A stretch of 63,994 nucleotides of DNA, filler included, from Bigelowiella natans CCMP2755 (Eukaryota > Protista > Cercozoa): NCBI GenBank assembly GCA_000320545.1. It is 4 parts of 4 records of this genome, joined end to end, with 100 filler letters (N's around TTAATTAATTAA, not from the genome) between each part and the next. Parts side by side here need not be neighbours in the genome. Positions count along the whole stretch, not along the records: positions 31,023 to 40,590 come from ADNK01001489.1; 3 more parts are not named here. One strand, given 5' to 3'. Below the pieces are notes generated by a model. That model saw only the letters and a program-made list of their open reading frames with translations. It was not told where the DNA came from and did not search any database. The first letter of the stretch is position 1; each line of letters begins with the position of its first letter. This document shows, piece by piece, positions 2,337-40,590 of the stretch. The translations under genes were made by a program, and so were the position numbers.

Positions 2337-4232
2337 TTACTTATCAGACACTCGAAATAGAGACAAGTGTTGTCGTCGGATGAAATGCCTATCACGCTTC
2401 ATCTTTGGGGGGGTTGGTTTGAAAAACGAGATTGGTACGAAGATGGGTGCCTTGTTCTCCGAACTCACGTTATTTTCATCCACAGATGTACTATGTTTCT
2501 GTGCTCGGATTTCAGTGGAAACTTTGTTTCCAGATTTATTTGATTTCATCAATTGCGAATCTGGAGTAACAAACTGTTGCGCTAGGACGGCTTTTGTTTT
2601 AGGAGTTTGAGGCTTAGTCGAGAATATTCGGTCGCTTTTAACAGGTTGATTAACTGGAATTTCGCGAAGAACCCCTTTTTTTACTATTTTCCCACTCAAT
2701 ATTCCAATAATTTCATCAGCATGTGAGCGTTTCTTCGGGTTCCATTGCAATCCTCTCTGGATTATCTTAATTTCTTCGTTTCCGGCAAGAGGGACTCGAA
2801 CGTGAAGGGGACGAATTGGGCGCTTTTTCACTGGTAAGCGAATCTCAAACTGGAAACCAGGATCGCTGATTTCGTAAACACGAGTATTAGTATTGCACAT
2901 GACTTCAAATAAAAATCGATTGACCTCCGGAACGCATATGCAGTGGATTTTGATATCGTGCCAATAGTCCTGGCAATTAAGTTCAATTGTTCTTGATCAG
3001 TGCGCCCAGCGAAAAGAGGGGTGCCTTTTATCATCTCAGCAAAAACACATGCCGCGGACCAAACGTCGATTCCACTCCCGTAAGCTTTGCTGAAAATGGT
3101 TATAGTCACTGCAAACTACTTCAATGCTGAATATATAATCGAAACTTCTCAACCTTCCGGCCAGAAGTTCAGGGGCGCGGTACCACCGGCTTGCTATGTA
3201 ATCCGTCAATGGAGGGATTTTGTGTGCCTTCTTTTTCTTCTTTGTTGTTTCTACTTCTCTCGCCAATCCGAAGTCGCACAATTTTGCATGGCTCGGTGGA
3301 TGAATAAGAATGTTTTCAGGCTTGACATCCCGGTGGAGCATACCCTGGTTAAATTGTTTACTCAGTGCAAGCGAAGTTAAATCGTAAAGAGAAATTGCGA
3401 GTGTAGCCTTGATAGTACATTCTATTATTCACCTACATTTCGATGCATATGAGCCAAGCCTTTGAGAATACCAGTAAAAATGGTGCGAGATCTATCAACT
3501 CCTAATGGCTTCGTTTTTCCATCTTTTGTGACCATTACTTCCAACAAGTTTTTCTCAACGTACTCCATTAAAAGTCTGAGAATTGCTGAAATAAACCTAA
3601 TCTATTCAAGGAACTGTATATGAAGCTTACATTCGCTCCCCGATCTTATTCAAAGTTGTATCGATGAATTCCACAATATTTGGCTGTCCAGTTCAATGGG
3701 AAAGACAAAAGACGCATTGTTAGTAAAATGTAGTGAAATTGGTAGTAATGAAGAATGTTACGTGGCGCAATCTTCGAAGCATCTCAATCTCACGCGTCAT
3801 TATCTGATGGGCGAAATAAAATGATGAAATAGAAGTAAAATCAATAAAAGTTCACTTTGTTCTGCAGATATGCGTGGTCGGGCAGCAACTTGAACTCTTT
3901 AAGAGCGACAATCCTTCCTGTGGATAGTGCCTTTGCCTTGAATACCTTGCCTGAGAAAGAAATATATATATGCACATCTGCGGTTCGAGGTTCAAAATAG
4001 GGCCCTGGATGCAAAAAATACTAAATGAATAATCAATGTACTCAAGCTCCTGGCCCTTCCCTTTGTGGTCACAAGCGACGATGATAGTGGCGAGCAAGTT
4101 CAGAGAAACAAAAATGAGTCGGGGAAGGCGACCATAACATCCTTCTCCGATTTTATTCTGGATGTGGTAAGTATCCGTCTTTGTCTCTATAGGGGGGAGT
4201 GGGGGATAGACGGAGGCAGCTGGTGTCCCCAT
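2337..4232 (-). CDS. CMGC Ser/Thr kinase, CDKL/MAK-like (multi-exon)
   Basis: Exons give IGEGCYG|KVFKA..VALKEFK, REIEMLRRLRH, HRDVKPENIL, KLCDFGLARE, activation loop LTDYIASRWYRAPELL (TxY) and DVWSAACVFAEM, followed by a basic disordered tail (2337-2900 ORF). The splice into the tail is not resolved. Confidence 0.9.
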
Positions 4233-31022: not shown

Positions 31023-31032
31023 CCCCACCCCC

Positions 31033-31072
<40 letters not shown>

Positions 31073-31336
31073 GGCACAAATGATGCCATCTTCAATATAC
31101 ATTCTGTCTCTCATATCGTAGTTATGTTGCGCGCCCCCCGTGTTTGTAATTGTATTTGTATGTGTGTGTGTGTGTGTGCGCGCGCGTGCACTACGGCCGT
31201 GTTTATTTTCAGCCTGAATGCATGCGTGGACGACCACTTACAACAGGTATTGTTTTGACAAACACACACACACACACACACACGCAAACACACACACACA
31301 CACACACGCACGCATAAATACGAATCAAACAAAGGA

Positions 31337-31377
<41 letters not shown>

Positions 31378-32514
31378 ACTAAAATCGCGCGCGCGCGGTT
31401 TTGTATGCGTGCGTCTTATTATTCGCGTGTTTTGGCGGATTGCTATGTTTCTGTTGGCTCAAAAGATACGGAGGCAAATAGAGTATGAGAAGCAAAAGGC
31501 TTCGGGTGGAAGTTCTGGCGGGGGGGCGGGTGACGACGACGACGACGATTTGGTAGTAATGCAGTTGGTCGCACGCATGGTGTAGATGATGATAATAACC
31601 ACCACGGTGGTGGTGGTGAATAGTGATTATGATGATGACGATGATGCTTCCTCTTTCTCATCATACGAATCTTTGCTCACATAGTTCTCCGCGGATTTCG
31701 CTAAGCTGAGAGGGCCTAGTAGTAAGTCATGTTTTCTCACATGTCTGCTGTTTCTTCCTCGCGCTCGAAGGATCGCTTCGTGAGTGTTTCATGCCATATG
31801 TGCATTTGTTGCAAATACTGAATATCCCCCTCCCCCCCCCCCCCCCCGCCGTGTTGCGAAAGGCTCAGGAGCAGCAGTGATGAATCCTTGCCCCCCCCCT
31901 GTCGAGCCTATATCAGGGCCTTCTGCGGAGGATGGTAACCGCTAACAACTGTTGTAGATTAGAATGCCAGAAAGACACGCACACGCGCGCCACTCCGACC
32001 CCAGATCGACTCTATTGCTTCTTCACGCATATTCTCTAACAATCCCTCCAGGAAAGAGGAAGAAGAAGAAGAAGAAGAAAAAGGTAGCAGCCTTTCTTCA
32101 GCGTTTGTTTACGCAAACAGGATAGCAAAAGTGGAGGGGGGGGGGGGGGGGGGGGGGGGGGCGTAGCTGGAACGTTGTCACACTCTCTCGCGCGCGCGCC
32201 GCTGTCTCTTTCTCCAGATTTCATCTCTATTTGGTATCATGTCAGAAGATGCTGGTGTAGAAAGGGGGGGGGGGGGCATGTGCTTGTTGCTTCGGTTTTC
32301 GGCATTCTATGCAGTCGTTCACATTATTCGTTTGTGCTCAGAAGAAGAAAGGAGCTCAAGGCGCCGATGCGTCGAAGGTCCGCGCACCATGATAGCCTTC
32401 ATCTCTTTGTGCCTATATGAAAAGAAGGACAAAAAGAGAGAATGTGTTTGCAAATGCTAGTTGGTATGTTCTGTTCTCAATGTATTCGTTCATAAACATA
32501 TTTGCATTTATATA

Positions 32515-32959
32515 ATGGACAACGTCTTTCAGCAGTTCGGCGATGATTTCGACGCTGATTTCGCCGATTTTGGCGATTTCGAGTCGGGGAACACCGCCAA
32601 CAATGCTCCACAGGAGTCGTCACAGCAGCAGGTTCTGACTCGCTGCGCACTGTTTTCCCCTTACCGCAAAAGAAGACCAAGGATTCTCGTAGATCTCGCC
32701 CTTCGCCATTGCAAGCTTTCTCGTTAGTTAGTTCTTTGTTCTACCCATTTTTGCGTAATGTTGTACTCTCCTCCTCCCCAACTCTCCATTTGGTGTTCTG
32801 CAGAGCTACGACGCATCAGGGTGGGAAGCTTCATTTGACAGCGGAATGGGCACATCCTCACCCTCTTCAGAGATGAAAAGCGGAGGCAACACCACCGCTA
32901 GCGGGAACACTGCAAACAATGCCAACGCCGTGAATGACATCCTTGGCTTATTTTCGTAG
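32515..32959 (+). CDS. 90-aa disordered protein made of clathrin-adaptor-binding-like motifs
   Basis: Exons 32515-32631 and 32804-32959 (GT-AG, phase 0). Protein: MDNVFQQFGDDFDADFADFGDFESGNTANNA..GWEASFD..SGNTANNANAVNDILGLFS*. Confidence 0.65.
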
Positions 32960-33660
32960 AGAGTGCTATATAATGTAGATGGTGCATGGTCATGTAATCT
33001 CACACTGCTGTATCTCTAGATCTAGCCATGTATACACACGCCTAGACACGCATCGCATATGCTAGCATGGCCTGCATTGGCTGTTCTAGTGTTGTTGCTG
33101 TCACCGATGACAATAGACATACGTACATATGACATATATTATATATATTATATATACTGTGTCCATAGTGATGCGAACGTTGTTCATGTTGATGCATTGC
33201 ATAATGTGCGATGAAAAGATCTAGAGGAGGAATGGCGCAATTGGCCGCACTGCATGATAGCCTGCGAAAGTTCGAACCCGTGCTACCTCTATAGGCACCA
33301 TTTTGTCAATCGCGCTGCTTGCGCACACACGACGATGTTTAGATGTGACTGTCTGCTAGCTATGCTGGCGCAACCTATAAACGCTTATCTCATCTTGGGG
33401 CCGAATCATCATGCGTGCATGCTTGCCGTCCTATCTAGCTATAGCTAGCTAGCTAGGCCGCATGCAGATGTTGTCAATGGGTGCTAGATTGCGTGATTTC
33501 ACGAGCATCTAGACATTCAGGTACAGCTGGACAACAACACCAATTGCACAGTGATGACCAATAAGCATGCTAGCATGACGTTGTGAATTGCGACCCACGT
33601 TAGGTGATGCTGATGATGATCGAGTCATGATCCTCGGCTAGCGCTATATAGTCAGTGCGC

Positions 33661-34580
33661 TCAGACACTTGCACTAGTTGCAGTCGTTTCTTCGAACACC
33701 CATGTGATGTTCTGCGATTCATCTAAGATTTCTTTGATTGTGTCCCATCTTGGAAGCGCCTCAGCGGATTTTTTCCCTCTGATCTTGATGTGAATCTGAG
33801 ATGGATTTGATGAGATTTCATTTGTTTCTTCACATGCGCACACACGTGCTTCGTGAGCCCATCCACGTATGAACAAGTCGTGAAGCTGTAAGTGAATTTG
33901 ATGTGCAAGATATGATCTATGCATGGCAACCTTCTGTCCGTATTGGTACTTGTACCCTCCTCTCAGGATGTCATTGAAAGCATCAAGGTTGCGACCGAAG
34001 TCTGGGGAAAATCAGATTAATGACAGCGATGAAGACGAATGTTGCAATGATGGCACCAATAGCAGGATATGACAACGGCACGAATGAAATGATGACGATG
34101 ATAGACCTTTAAAATCAGGACAAAATGTTTCTGCGACTCTATCATAAAACTGGTTGAGGTCCGCATGACCCCTTAGATCTAGTTCCACCCCTATTATTTC
34201 TGAGAAACAACAACGTCGGTGATAAGTTCAACAAGGACGATGCTAATTATTACGAGTGTAATGGCATCCGGAATGGGTTCAGATAGAATGATACAGACGA
34301 ACAGCCATGGCAATAATGATGATAGTCAAATATTGATGATAACGATGACAACGATCCGGTGGCGACTGTGCGACTAAGACAATGAATTCGACGATAGCAC
34401 GACGACTAGACTGCAAGTGTTTCGTGTCTATGCATCCACTGATAGATAGATGATGAAAATGATGACGACGGGGTCTGTCTTTAATAGTGTGACCGTCGGA
34501 GATAATAATGACAATTTTGCTGGTTTTGAGAATTGCGAGCTTGTGTGCATAAAATCACCGTTGCTGTTTTCGCTGGACAT
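33661..34580 (-). CDS. Barstar (barnase inhibitor) family protein, 5 exons, ~108 aa
   Basis: Exons 34580-34559 (alternative first exon 34308-34299), 34190-34107, 34001-33956, 33885-33846, 33795-33661, all GT-AG and phase-consistent. Protein: ..VELDLRGHADLNQFYDRVAETFCPDFKDFGRNLDAFNDILRGGF..HIKIRGKKSAEALPRWDTIKEILDESQNITWVFE. It contains the barstar G-x-NLDA-x2-D signature at the expected position and has barstar length. Confidence 0.85.
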
Positions 34581-34782
34581 TGCAGAATTTATCGTTATTC
34601 CTGCTTATTCATAGTCAAATCGTTATGATCGTTATCGTTCCCGTCATTCATCGTTAAAGCAGAGCGGGAGGGGGTTGGCGAACAGAAGGTGCTTAAAAAA
34701 GCACAAGCAGGCTATTTACACGAGAAGACTTCAATTCTCTCCCATAATATAATTTAATACATAATGCAAGAATTTTCATTGG

Positions 34783-34919
34783 TGCGACATGGCTGGTCAT
34801 AACTTTTTTGGAAAAGCCGGGCAACTGAGAATTAGTAGCATACAATTACACCTCATTTTTGTCGTGTGACTTCCATAATTTGATGTCGCAGGATAATAAA
34901 CCGATAAAACCATGTCGCA
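34783..34919. promoter_or_regulatory. Divergent promoter (barstar / NanA-like) with oriented CATGTCGCA motifs
   Basis: TGCGACATG at 34783-34791 faces barstar. ATGTCGCA at 34883-34890 and CATGTCGCA at 34911-34919 face the lyase ATG at 34948. Confidence 0.5.
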
Positions 34920-34947
34920 CGAATGAGCATAAACGAAGCAAGGGATA

Positions 34948-36164
34948 ATGGTTTCCGGCAGCGTTTCGAAGCAACCCCCATTGCTGCCATGCCTAGCCGT
35001 TGTGCTCCTGGCAACTGTAGCGACAGAGGCGTCTTCCCCGCCTACTCCGATTCAAAAGAAATGGCTTGAAGCAATGCCGGAAGAGATGGTTTTGCACGCG
35101 CCGTACACGCCTTTTCGAGCCGACTACAGCCTGAACGCAACAAAGACAATGGTGGACGGGCTCGCCGCCCAGGCTGCGGCATTCGGCGTGACCACAGTGT
35201 GGGTGCCTGGAACGATGGGACAATTCGAGACTCTGACCATTGCAGAAAGGAAGGAACTCGTAGCTCGATGGGTGGAGGCTGGACACCGGCACGGACTTTA
35301 CATTATCGCCCACGTGGGGACGAACTCTATCGAAGAGGCAAGGGACCTTGCCGCGCACGCTCAGAAGGTCGGTGCTGATGCCATCGCATCGGTACCGCCT
35401 TTCTATGGCTCCGTGACGGATGTTGACGCGATTGTGGCCTTCCTCGGAGAGATTGCGAAAGGAGCGGCCGAGCTACCTTTGTTCTACTACCACATCCCTG
35501 GGACGACGCACGCCACGATCAAGGCGATGGACCTCTTCGCTTCTGCTCAGAATAACGGTCTTCACAGTTTGATGGGAGTGAAGTACGTGTCGACTGACAT
35601 GGGGGACTGGTACGTTCACTAGCACATGTTTTCCCATGACATTACATTTGAAAGTAACGGACTATCCGGGGGGGGGGGGGGGGGGGGGTTTGGAGAGAAC
35701 GACAAAATATGACTCTTTGAATTTAGCTTACAGAATACATAATCGACATTCATCTATTGCGTTCCTGTCTCAGGTTTAACCTTGTAGCGACGTATAACAC
35801 AACGAAGGCGCTGCTCTTTGCTCCTGAGCCCAAGCTAGCATCCTTTGGCCTTGGAATTGGCCGTGGCACAGTACTCGCAGAGGACTTCTTCGCCGGCACG
35901 TATCGTCGTATGAAGCAGAGTTTCTTCTCCTCATCGTCTGCTAGCACGAATGCTACTTTGGAGCAAGCATGGAAGCTAGCCGCAGGTGCAGTGTTCGGGC
36001 AATATGGAGGTGGTTCTGCGGAGAGGACTGTGTATGGACGCTTCCCGCACACGTGCGAGCTCGATCTTGGCCCTCCACGATTGCCTTCGAAGCCAATTAC
36101 GCAAGAACAAAAGAAAGAGCTTTTCAAGGCGCTGGATTCAATCGATTTCTGGAACAGGTTGTAG
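34948..36164 (+). CDS. N-acetylneuraminate lyase / DHDPS-family class I aldolase with predicted signal peptide
   Basis: Motifs APYTPF, GTMGQ (GxxGE variant), IIAHVG, GADAIASVPPFY, LFYYHIPGTT and Schiff-base GVKY. One intron (~35610-35773) joins DW|FNLV. Hydrophobic leader LLPCLAVVLLATVATEA. Confidence 0.85.
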
Positions 36165-37024
36165 CTTATCAGAGCGTCATGATCTCTTGTTTCAGAATGA
36201 GTACGCAGCTTTGCCGTTTTTTGAGCACGTCGGCCCCGTTGTCCTATAAGTAAAGATGGGGGCGACCTCTATGTCTTTTCCAATATCACAAACATGCACC
36301 GGTATATGCGGTTGATGCACGCATGCTACTAGGCATGAAGCACATTCTACATGTCACATGTTAGCTCTTCAGCGCCGCGTGCAGTACACAAACACATGCA
36401 TCTACGCATGCATCTGCTACACGATGTTATAGTAATTGATGAACATAGCCGTAGGTGTATACACATGTGTACATACACAATCAACACATATGCAACCTAG
36501 CAACCCTGTTTGAGACTCACTCACTCACAAAATAAACATAAAGTGTAGCCATTGTTGTAGCTACATGATTAGAACTAAATAGAATTTTCCTTTTGAATGT
36601 GCATCGCTAGATCTTTGCATCCATGCTAGCCGCACGATGCGATCGATCGCACCCCGGACTGCATGCATGTGCACATATGCATATATTTATTTATTTATAT
36701 TCGCCCCACCATGTGGTGGGTGCAGCTTGCATCCGATACATCCATAAGTATGGGTTGAAAGGAGGCCGTGTACTTGTTCAAGAGCTGCGCAGTTAGTTGG
36801 CTGCAGTGTCATTCACAAACTCCACAGTTTACAGTGAAGAGCCCGCAGTAATAACGCCGTTGTTTGTTGAACTATACCTCTCGCACACAATTTGTGGCGA
36901 TTTTGCCGCTCCATTTCCCTCCGACCTGTAGGCATCTGACATGACTTCTGATAAGACAGACGCTTCTTTGGTTCTACCTGCGTTGTACAAAAAACAACGC
37001 ATCGATCAGCCGCGGAGAAAATAG

Positions 37025-39045
37025 CTAGCCCCATCTCCGCACACAAGCCACATATATGAACAAGTCACTCAAACTGCGCCCCCCCCCCCCCCCCGGCCCA
37101 ATATCAATTGCACACTCAGTTATTTTCCATGCATTGCGTCGTCGCATGTGCGTGTGTTCGTGCGCATCTGCGAATATGCACAGAAGCGCGTGTGGGCGTC
37201 CAGTTCCATAAAACGCACTTTTTGGCCTGCTGGTAGGAAGTCTCCGCGATCCGCCTAACCCAGAGCGGATCGAGCGAGCGCCATTGCGAAATGTTGTAGA
37301 GGCCCCCTTGGCCTCCACGCGGGACATGTTGATACCGCGGGAGGCTCTCTGGTGAATCTCAATGACAGAAACGCCGCCAATCGCGTAAAAAAGCCTCGCC
37401 GCGAAGAGGGGAAGGAGCATTGCGACTTGCGGAATGCATTGGAGAGTGGCGATTGTCACGTAGAGGGCGGTGTATCTGCAAAAACATCAAATGACATCCG
37501 GCGGTGCTCGTAATCCCCGTCATTGCTGTCATCTCGCGCCATGTTTGCATCGAGCTTGTTTTGCTAGAGGCTGCTGCAAAGTCCTCCGAGAAGGCTATTC
37601 TCTTCTTTCTTATGACCCGCCCTCCCCCCGCATTACAACATGCATTCATCGATATGCTCTTATGATCGGTTGTACTCACTCGCCGCTGCCTTGAAGCCAC
37701 GCAATGAGGGCCACGCCAACGATCCCGGATATGATCGCCGTGTATAGAGATAGACCGAGCTCCTTAGCTTCGTTGTACTGTCAGGCAATCAAAACATAAT
37801 TCATGGCCAATCTCAGCTGGGAAATAGTTCAGCTAGTTTAGTTGGAGGAGGGGGGGGGGGGGAGAGGGGGGCAAGGATCAGTATTTGCTTGACTCTGCAG
37901 CGTGCAAAAAGCCCTCTAGCAAGATGTACCTCAAGTCCAAGAAAATTGAAAAAGACCACACTGACCTATATCACATCCCCGCCCCTACTCCAAAGTCTAC
38001 CCGTCTCTCCCTTATATATTTCAGGGTGTGTAATCGATCAATGATACCTGCAATGGGGCCTCCCTTGCATCATAGGCCAGCTTCGTGATGACGAGGGCAA
38101 ACGTCGCTAGCACCGCGATAGTGAGGTAGAAGAACGTCGTGTCAAACGCGCAGATGTGCACGGTCGTGACGCTGCTCGCACTTTCATTTGATATCGAGAT
38201 CGTCGTCGCCCGGGGGGGGGACACGAAAGAGTGAATGCCTGCAGGAAGGAACATGTTACAACGTCGCGCGCGAAAACGCAGCAGCAAAGAGGCGACGAGG
38301 GCAGAGCACTCTGAGAGAGGCACATGCAACATGCAACGCCGCGCGATAGCGCCTTTACCGCCCTACCTAACAGGAGGGTGATGACCGCCAGCGGAACCAC
38401 GAACAGTCGGATCAGATGCACATCGCTGAGCTTCGAGATGTTGTCCATCGTCTTTGTGAAGATACGATATATCCGGTACGTTTTGACGCCCAGCGCTGAG
38501 AAGACCATCGCCATCCCGACCGGAGGAAGCCACAGCCTTGCGGCGCAGTTTGACGACGCTGTCGCAAAATGACATATGCAAATCTCAGATTAGCAGGGGC
38601 TAATCGGGGAGCACCGCGCATCGACGGCATCGCCTTTATTCAGCACTACGACAGAGGAAAGAATCGACTGAACCAAAGACGCGGTGTACAGAGCGGAGTA
38701 TATACTGTTTCGATGTTGTATTATCAAGAAGGCTTTGACCGCACATGGTTTGTCAGCTATGTAGAGCGGCGTGGCGACGATGCAAAGTAGGAACCCAGCA
38801 ATGGTCAGAATGGAGAATGTCATGCTGTGAGTATGGACAAGAGGGGGAGGGGGGGCGACGGGGGGCGAGGGAAGTAAGCAACAGCATCGTATGATAACGA
38901 TAGGGAAGAGGAGGAAAGGGGAGGCAAGAGATGACGGAGACAGAAATTGGACCAGTGTGCACAAAAATACGCATATTATCCCATGTTGGTAGGACGACAG
39001 ACAACTGCCCACCCCCACACACACAGAGAGAGAGAGAGAGGAGAG

Positions 39046-39088
<43 letters not shown>

Positions 39089-40026
39089 AGAGAATAAAAG
39101 AGAATGAGAGGGGGGGGGGGGGGCAGGAGAGAATGATGAGCTTAGAAGTAGGTACTACGGTCTCAAGCCGAACCTAATTCCCTTGATGAGCTCGTGGCGT
39201 CTATAGCAAACTAGAAGCAAGAGGATGAGGAGGCATGCCAGAATGCTGAGGACGGCCACTGCTAAGATGAAGGCCTTGAGCTCCTTTGCCAGCGTCAGGG
39301 TTTCCCGCTTCGGAGGCTCGTACGTGTTTGACGCCCACTGTCTCCATGCAGCTGACGTATTCTTCAAGTGATTGCAGGCGATTTGGTATCTGCGAAAAGA
39401 AAATTTGTTTTCACGACAAAGCGAAGGCATGCATGCAACGTCCCGAGGCCGCGGACAGTGTGCGTTGGTGATGTGACGAGTGAGTGCGGTGATGGCAGTG
39501 GAGAGGTTGTTGTTGTTGTTGTTGTTGTGGGGGTGTGATGAGCGAGCGAGGGGGACGATGGCAATGACAGTCATGACGACGGCGACGATGATAATGATGA
39601 TGATGATGATGATGATGACGGATGATGAAGCTCACGGTGCTGATGCTGTTGTTCTTAATATTACGACGCATTGCGGAACATCTCTCGATATGGATCGGGT
39701 TGAATATGCACGTCGTTGCTGTTCTCATTCATCGGTCGTACTCAATGCCAAGGTGCCCTCCCGTGAATCCCGTTTGCGGTATATCCTTAGCCCACAGCGA
39801 ATCCATTTGCTCCTGTGTTATCTTAAAACGCCGGTACATTTGTCCGAAATCATGATACACATCCTTCGAGTTTCCAGTCATTACTCTGAGGGGGGTGGGG
39901 GGGTGGGGGCGACGGGGGCGAAGATTAACAGGTAGTTATTCTTCGTCCTCGTTGTGTCTTTTTAAGGGAGCGAAAGATGAAAGAGGAGAGATGTAGATAT
40001 GTCAAAACAATATGGAAGAGAAAACC

Positions 40027-40072
<46 letters not shown>

Positions 40073-40364
40073 GAGAAAAATAGAATCTCCAGCCACATCA
40101 TCACCAACATGCGCAGCTCCAAAACGGCAAGAATACGAGCACACGTGTCGTTCATACTTTGGGCTAGCAATCTTCCGCAGCTGCACGATTGGAAAGTCGC
40201 AGTCAATCGACCCCACCCCCTTAAGCGACTTTGTGTTTCCATCGTAGCACTTCTGTGAGTAGGGGGGAAAGGCCACGCGCTGAATTCTGACTTGTCCAAA
40301 CAAGTCTTCTGGTATATAGCCGGCCTTCATCACCATAGGTTCCCCTCTCAGCAGTTTTGCAAAG
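37025..40364 (-). CDS. Class C (GABA-B-like) GPCR with OpuAC/ProX-like substrate-binding ectodomain; 5' end lost in gap
   Basis: 7TM segments AFILAVAVLSILACLLILLLLVCYRRHELIK, CAARLWLPPVGMAMVFSALGVKTYRIYRIF and YNEAKELGLSLY. Ectodomain RGEPMVM..QRVAFPPYSQKC..DCDFPIVQLRK and IACNHLKNTSAAWRQW. The 3' end is approximate. Confidence 0.8.
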
Positions 40365-40590
40365 CTGTCAAATCAATGAGGAAGGGAAGAAGGGGGGGGG
40401 GGGGGGGGGGGGGGATTTTTTCTGTTGGTGGGATTTCCTTTTTTCACAATTTTTTTCTTTCCCCCCCTTCAAAAAAAATTTTTTTTGTTCCCCCCCGGTA
40501 AAAAAGGGCCGAAAAGGTAGGGCCTTTTTTTCCCTAAAACAAACCCAAAAAAAGGGAAAAGGGGAAAAAAAAAAGGGGGGGGAAAAAGGT

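Follow-up and report, generated by a model that had tools for sequence, protein, structure and literature searches.

A spliced and polyadenylated nuclear gene of Bigelowiella natans encodes a barstar-family protein that groups with homologues from other eukaryotes

The barstar gene of Bigelowiella natans, a chlorarachniophyte alga, lies on the minus strand of the DNA analysed here (referred to as the window, viz. the whole stretch of 63,994 nucleotides). It is a spliced, polyadenylated and expressed nuclear gene, and the 106-aa single-domain protein that it encodes is a true member of the barstar family based on its HMM match, its fold and its sequence motif. This gene, with its Pfam domain, is already present in public gene catalogues. 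The present analysis corrects the gene model, proves from transcripts that the gene is spliced and polyadenylated, and provides evidence that it belongs to a clade of eukaryotic sequences, as against a private transfer into this species. The protein (denoted as P0001) was retrieved when the open frame window:33664-34011:- was used as the query of a word search, and it is the same as EukProt EP00466 Bigelowiella natans P017439 and JGI Bigna1 136274, with an additional entry in MMETSP. A near-copy of it differing in 3 residues (P0002) is likewise found in the MMETSP transcriptome collection.

The whole gene occupies positions 33552-34690 and its coding part positions 33661-34580, and the protein encoded by this intron-split stretch contains DFGRNLDAFNDILRGG. 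P0001 shows 97-100% identity to two open frames of the window, one of which aligns with a gap of 45 residues, and when it was matched to the window by means of a script, a single GT-AG exon chain reproduced it exactly. The resulting transcript-supported model consists of 4 exons and 3 GT-AG introns, and all of its parts are on the minus strand. The 5' UTR (34581-34690) is followed by the coding part of exon 1 (34559-34580), comprising the ATG, residues M1-N7 and the first base of the E8 codon, and then by intron 1 (34200-34558; 359 nt, phase 1). Exon 2 (34107-34199) encodes residues E8-K38, which correspond to strand beta-1 and helix alpha-1 of the barstar fold, and the open frame window:34015-34227:- matches residues 7-38 of P0001 with 97% identity. 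After intron 2 (34002-34106; 105 nt, phase 1), exon 3 (33931-34001) encodes D39-K62, which includes FGRNLDAFNDILRGG and the inhibitory helix alpha-2 of this fold with D45 and D49. Intron 3 (33796-33930; 135 nt, phase 0) is open in frame and, due to this, an 87-aa ORF is seen in the ORF track. The coding part of exon 4 (33661-33795) encodes I63-V106 (strand beta-2, helices alpha-3 and alpha-4, and strand beta-3) and the TGA stop, and it is followed by the 3' UTR (33552-33660) with a poly(A) site near 33552. The four coding segments are based on the exact match to P0001 and the three introns on this match together with the transcript joints. The 5' end is approximate, as the contigs from runs X1, X3 and X8 reach 34690, 34683 and 34664, respectively; the transcript contigs stop near 34690, the RNA depth on this side is zero past 34703, and an AT-rich stretch is present about 55-80 nt upstream.

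The transcript evidence comes from four public runs, which were examined over positions 33300-34900. The joints 33795>33931, 34001>34107 and 34199>34559 were each present in contigs from three studies, at depths of 88-292, and all three read CT..AC on the plus strand, which is GT..AG on the strand of the gene. In run X21, stranded raw RNA reads extend over exon 4 and the 3' UTR (the depth spans 33516-33800), and the loose ends of these reads at 33797 run on into exon 3. The poly(A) site is marked by T runs before 33552 on the plus strand, which are seen in the X21 raw reads and in an X1 contig. Unspliced contigs were also observed across introns 3 and 1 at about 15-30% of the spliced depth in three runs, with the unspliced form of intron 1 at about 15% of depth, and these could represent intron retention, pre-mRNA or DNA carry-over.

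An earlier note on this DNA, made from the sequence alone, had described five short exons with four introns encoding a protein of about 108 aa, and had named RNA evidence for the junctions as a check. The intron-split minus-strand gene is confirmed by the transcripts, which reveal three joints and a poly(A) tail; however, the additional joint of that model is present in none of the runs, the number of exons and introns is four and three, and the product, being identical to P0001, is 106 aa in length. In a three-frame translation of the minus strand over 33600-34700, the barstar-like pieces (viz. ...EIIGVELDLRGHADLNQFYDRVAETFCPDFK, DFGRNLDAFNDILRGGYKYQYGQK and IHIKIRGKKSAEALPRWDTIKEILDESQNITWVFEETTATSASV, the last followed by a stop) share one frame, which is broken by one stop and by non-matching stretches. 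The five-exon model read RGGF and invoked an extra intron of 38-50 nt. In P0001, the residues after RGG are YKYQYGQK, which join straight to IHIKIRG, and both P0001 and P0002 thus read RGGYKYQYGQK|IHIKIRG.

These results also bear on whether the gene could be a contaminant, an assembly artefact or a pseudogene, a reading whose probability we regard as negligible. Nothing was found in its favour, and it is refuted by the exact GT-AG exon chain together with the transcript evidence: the spliceosomal introns, the poly(A) tail and the high spliced depth in several independent studies argue against it, as do the intact ORF, a second transcriptome entry with only 3 different residues and the embedding of the gene between genes of eukaryotic type. 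The view of the earlier note that this is a resident nuclear gene is thus borne out by its spliceosomal introns, its poly(A) tail and its eukaryotic-type neighbours. The neighbourhood was surveyed by searching Pfam with every stop-to-stop open frame of at least 55 aa (90 in total) in the 9.6-kb piece 31023-40590 (exons of under 55 codons could escape such a scan), and the sole matches were to DHDPS, 7tm_3, Barstar and, weakly, MARVEL. The DHDPS-family frame (dihydrodipicolinate synthase / N-acetylneuraminate lyase-like; 34948-35622, plus strand) has a hydrophobic N-terminus and is arranged head-to-head with the barstar gene, with about 260 bp between its ATG and the 5' end of the barstar transcript, and the two genes may share a bidirectional promoter region. 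The 7tm_3 match (class C GPCR transmembrane domain; E 1.4e-7) is to an open frame at about 38110-38589 on the minus strand, which is probably an exon of a receptor-like gene. Microsatellites of the (GT)n/(CA)n and (GA)n types are present at both ends of the piece (31023-31330 and 40000-40100), and TAGC-rich repeats (33436-33458) are found just downstream of the barstar poly(A) site.

The assignment of P0001 to the barstar family, as proposed in the earlier note, is supported by three types of evidence, viz. a Pfam HMM score above the threshold, a predicted alpha/beta fold matching that of barstar, with helices packed onto a parallel sheet of three strands, and the retention of the DxxxD motif. 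Against Pfam Barstar (PF01337), for which the gathering threshold is 23.4 bits, P0001 scored 39.4 bits (E 6.2e-10), with residues 12-91 aligned to profile positions 4-82 of 96. The open frame of exon 3 alone (window:33664-34011:-) scored 20 bits over 16 residues (Pfam Barstar positions 29-44), and the exon-wise frames of the gene gave no match in NCBIfam. A single-sequence AlphaFold model of P0001 was poor (pLDDT 54.5) and an AlphaFold2 model based on a 71-sequence alignment was used instead. This model (pLDDT 83.6) shows the order beta-alpha-alpha-beta-alpha-alpha-beta, and in the PDB its best Foldseek matches (at least the top 20) are without exception chains of barstar (1b2s, 1bgs, 1brs, 2za4 and 1a19), with TM scores of 0.61-0.67 by query and 0.72-0.78 by target, rmsd of 2.2-2.6 A and probability 1.00, whereas E. 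coli YhcO (2cx6) and Salmonella barstar (5f4c) appear further down the list.

At the sequence level, a phmmer search of the PDB sequences with P0001 alone gave no barstar match, but a profile of its clade found barstar over the full length (E 4e-5), with GRNLDAFND aligned to GENLDALWD. In this alignment, the residues F40-G41-R42-N43-L44-D45-A46-F47-N48-D49 correspond to Y30-G-E-N-L-D35-A-L-W38-D39 of barstar and E88 corresponds to E76, so that the DxxxD of P0001 is formed by D45 and D49 of NLDAFND, aligned to NLDALWD in barstar. The clade alignment comprises 18 sequences, all of which have G41, D49 and G54; D45 is kept in 16 of them, and the position of E88 is occupied by E or D in 14. Y29 and W38 of barstar, which like E76 are hot-spot residues of the barnase-barstar complex, are replaced in P0001 by D39 (adjacent to F40) and N48. 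The protein is acidic (pI 4.95), and its domain begins at about residue 10, so that neither a signal nor a transit extension precedes it.

Barstar of Bacillus amyloliquefaciens (PDB 1BRS, 1A19 and 1B2S) is the intracellular inhibitor of barnase. The B. natans protein shares with it the fold and the Pfam family and is, like it, a small, acidic, single-domain protein; a helix of the form G-x-N-L-D-A-[LF]-x-D, in which D35 and D39 of barstar equal D45 and D49, and an acidic residue at the position of E76 (E88) are also common to both. However, the two proteins are only about 15% identical, in P0001 helix alpha-2 is followed by an additional GG[FY]G loop, and its gene is eukaryotic, contains three introns and has no RNase gene next to it. 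The Imm-Barstar family of bacterial polymorphic toxin systems, defined by Zhang et al. 2012 (PMC3482391) by 'DxxxD and several hydrophobic residues' and tied to barnase-like toxins, has the same family membership and DxxxD signature, but the B. natans gene is found in neither a toxin nor a polyimmunity neighbourhood. The eukaryotic carriers of Imm-Barstar in that work are dictyosteliida, Naegleria and chlorophyta, whereas Rhizaria, B. natans included, are absent from the list, and no eukaryotes are given in its Tox-Barnase entry.

The same Pfam family also includes short barstars from bacteria (Saccharimonadales, Planctomycetota, Polyangiales and Flavobacteriaceae), which have the same FGRNLDAFNDVLRGGFG motif and the same length as P0001 and are 35-48% identical to it. 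These proteins differ from the eukaryotic clade in their second strand, which reads IxLIWxNSxKS in the bacterial proteins and [IL]x[IV]x[IV]xG, followed by an R/K-W helix, in the eukaryotic ones, and the two groups are separated in the phylogenetic tree. More distant are the barstars of the actinobacterial RNase Sa-type/barstar pairs of Aeromicrobium (L011) and Streptomyces (L024), which belong to the same Pfam family and show the classical order of toxin followed by immunity gene. In both of them, a PF00545 RNase (80-87 bits) is encoded directly upstream of the barstar (L011:2504-2890 with 2887-3303, where the two genes overlap by 4 nt, and L024:2488-2922 with 2962-3348). The similarity to P0001 is limited to residues of about 11-51 for L011 and 21-85 for L024, at 33-48% identity, and these genes are linked to an RNase, whereas the B. 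natans gene is unlinked.

An exhaustive phmmer search with P0001 identified 102 representatives at E < 1e-3, and a profile word search identified 758 proteins, which are mostly metagenomic or bacterial, the named bacterial carriers including Saccharimonadales, Planctomycetota, Polyangiales, Flavobacteriaceae and Streptomycetaceae. The relatives have in common the subfamily motif FYDEV..LCP.F..FGRNLDAFNDILRGGFG. The best relatives of the B. natans protein are 39-48% identical to it, and the nearest labelled ones are eukaryotic. For the phylogenetic analysis, near-duplicates above 85% identity and domains with under 65 profile positions were removed before the tree was made, P0045 was excluded due to its long branch, and an IQ-TREE was constructed from 67 domain sequences with 96 columns. 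In this tree, all 6 eukaryote-confirmed sequences, 3 probable-eukaryote and 13 unlabelled rows form a clade with support of 95/92, which contains none of the 13 bacteria-confirmed sequences. The eukaryote-confirmed clade-mates of B. natans are a Chlamydomonas, Kryptoperidinium and a picoeukaryote contig, and within the clade B. natans groups with P0008 and P0010 (support 95/87). The phylogeny suggested in the earlier note has yielded a supported clade lacking any confirmed bacterial sequence. However, 13 of the 22 members are unlabelled metagenomic proteins and the tree is based on only 96 columns, and conclusions regarding the origin of the gene are limited because the alignment is short and these rows are unlabelled.

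Several of the relatives provide information about the genomic settings in which the family occurs. The homologue P0016 comes from MMETSP1392, which is Chlamydomonas chlamydogama (bioRxiv 10.64898/2026.09.23.753693). A number of metagenomic homologues have eukaryotic gene neighbours, and the barstar gene in those contigs is intronless; P0165, which belongs to the clade of B. natans, is found among genes for Sybindin, protein kinases and an EF-hand-PH-kinase, P0118 adjoins an EF-hand protein and P0111 adjoins Kelch proteins. Of the two proteins closest to that of B. natans, P0008 is encoded on a contig of 61% GC that carries a split APH kinase gene. P0010 (found on L001 and on a JGI contig), the nearest of the unlabelled clade members, is from a compact sequence of 25% GC with ankyrin/VWA/ART and PTH2 genes and many ORFans, a character typical of a giant virus or of an AT-rich intracellular symbiont, and a tblastn search of phage records with P0010 gave no match. 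The homologue from Kryptoperidinium foliaceum (P0109; MMETSP0120), which is 241 aa in length, carries two barstar domains in tandem as well as an N-terminal segment resembling a signal peptide. This points to a form of the family in this dinotom that takes the secretory or plastid route. A giant-virus MAG (IMG/VR GVMAG-M-3300024062-1) contains a barstar-like ORF of 113 aa (L030:3941-4282, plus strand), which is of the bacterial 'IWxN' type and shows 60% identity to P0001 over residues 14-55. In the phage-like contigs L032 (3017-4723, plus strand) and L033, a barstar-like segment (..YYGRNLDALNDVL..) is present inside a coiled-coil-rich protein of 568 aa.

The earlier note had inferred a horizontally acquired gene. 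An ultimately bacterial ancestry is indeed plausible, as the much larger subfamily within which the clade is placed consists overwhelmingly of bacterial or metagenomic proteins. However, the grouping with Chlamydomonas, Kryptoperidinium and the picoplankton contig at 95/92 is not in keeping with a lone acquisition by B. natans; since the eukaryotic clade excludes all confirmed bacterial sequences, an old shared algal gene is indicated and not a private recent transfer. The most economical scenario would be an old acquisition from bacteria by some eukaryote followed by spread among algae, which may have been vertical, endosymbiotic or lateral. The barstar ancestor probably entered from bacteria long ago and the introns would have been acquired later; that they were gained after the transfer is suggested by the intronless state of the homologues on picoeukaryote contigs. 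If, on the other hand, the gene had been transferred recently and in a lineage-specific manner from a bacterium to B. natans, one may point to the metagenomic or bacterial nature of most of the 758 profile matches and to the small number of known eukaryotic sequences. We consider such a transfer very unlikely, as three introns have been acquired, the modest identity of the best relatives and the eukaryotic identity of the nearest labelled ones are contrary to it, and the 95/92 clade is free of confirmed bacteria.

In terms of function, we lean towards the view, based on analogy with barstar, that P0001 is a protein of the cytosol which inhibits, in a stoichiometric manner, a ribonuclease of the barnase, RNase Sa or T1 type or a related one by means of D45, D49 and E88. 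The protein would then bind its RNase tightly and one-to-one, as barstar does, with the acidic face of helix alpha-2 (D45 and D49) and E88 plugging the active site. Its cytosolic location is probable because no targeting signal is present. The target class would be the barnase / RNase Sa / T1-type or a related BECR-fold ribonuclease that is not encoded adjacently, and the target could either be endogenous, with its gene elsewhere in the genome, or consist of RNases that bacteria deliver. A precedent for the inhibitor role is provided by L011 and L024, where distant bacterial members of the family are still found directly downstream of a PF00545 RNase gene, whereas the lack of an RNase domain in the piece 31023-40590 and the presence of D39 and N48 at the hot-spot positions of Y29 and W38 speak against it. 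Further, in three Pfam-annotated neighbourhoods of the closer bacterial relatives no PF00545 neighbour was recognisable, and the ORFs listed for L007 and L008 included no evident RNase (for L008, three ORFs were scanned). Due to the lack of a recognisable PF00545 neighbour in these closer relatives, the subfamily may bind something besides classical barnase, and its targets may belong to an RNase family as yet undescribed or may have no RNase nature. In two bacterial contigs, viz. L028 (2434-2952, plus strand) and the JGI contig of P0137 (729-1298), an uncharacterised ORF of 172-189 aa with no Pfam match is located immediately upstream of the short barstar gene and may encode a cognate toxin not described so far.

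A serious rival, which we nevertheless regard as improbable, is that the barstar fold has been re-used in algae for a partner other than an RNase, with GRNLDAF.D.LRGGFG serving a new interaction. The subfamily motif (R42, R52, G53-G54 and F/Y55) is unlike that of canonical barstar, Y29 and W38 of barstar are not conserved, and the closer bacterial neighbourhoods have these uncharacterised upstream ORFs in place of a recognisable barnase. However, among the acidic positions, conservation is highest at the equivalent of E76 and at the two aspartates that insert into the active site of barnase, the protein as a whole has remained acidic and no alternative partner is known, which speaks against such a re-use.

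No PF00545 or other RNase domain was detected by the Pfam scan (frames of at least 55 aa) in the piece 31023-40590, in agreement with the statement of the earlier note that no barnase partner is nearby, and no adjacent RNase toxin gene in the layout of a toxin-immunity pair was found within these positions. The protein could be a domesticated immunity protein with no endogenous partner, directed against barnase-type or BECR-fold RNase toxins of bacteria (prey, pathogens or symbionts) or of giant viruses. This defensive role is possible, if on the whole unlikely; it accords with the lack of a linked RNase, with the probable cytosolic location in the absence of a targeting signal, with the listing of eukaryotes under Imm-Barstar and of none under Tox-Barnase (PMC3482391), and with the persistence of the clade across algae in the absence of toxin linkage, whereas the signal peptide and the two tandem domains of the Kryptoperidinium protein better fit a secreted endogenous RNase. 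It could also be that P0001 restrains an unlinked endogenous RNase of B. natans (e.g. a secreted or digestive-vacuole enzyme) before its export, which is the canonical role of barstar, as for barnase in Bacillus. RNase-barstar pairs persist in bacterial relatives, eukaryotic genes need no linkage, and the signal-peptide-bearing tandem homologue in Kryptoperidinium is also in accordance with self-protection of this kind. This possibility appears somewhat more doubtful, in view of the lack of an RNase domain in the piece 31023-40590, the Tox-Barnase entry with no eukaryotes (PMC3482391) and the lack of a signal peptide in the B. natans protein itself.

Eukaryotic barstars have been on record since 2012 (PMC3482391), and the B. 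natans gene adds a rhizarian to their carriers. In the literature searched, no paper dealing with barstar together with Bigelowiella and no functional study of any eukaryotic barstar was found. As a speculative proposal, to which we assign a rather low probability, the algal/protist clade of barstars (viz. those of a chlorarachniophyte, a chlorophyte, a dinotom and uncultured picoeukaryotes), which lack a linked RNase, may constitute an innate-immunity module, in which a captured bacterial immunity protein guards the cytosol from RNase effectors of bacterial or giant-virus origin, and which in B. natans was maybe obtained via the green-algal endosymbiont. The B. natans barstar is tractable in this regard, as it is only 106 aa in length and simple rescue assays in E. 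coli are available. If the algal clade truly neutralises bacterial or viral RNase toxins, it would represent a clean case of a bacterial immunity protein that has been domesticated by eukaryotes.
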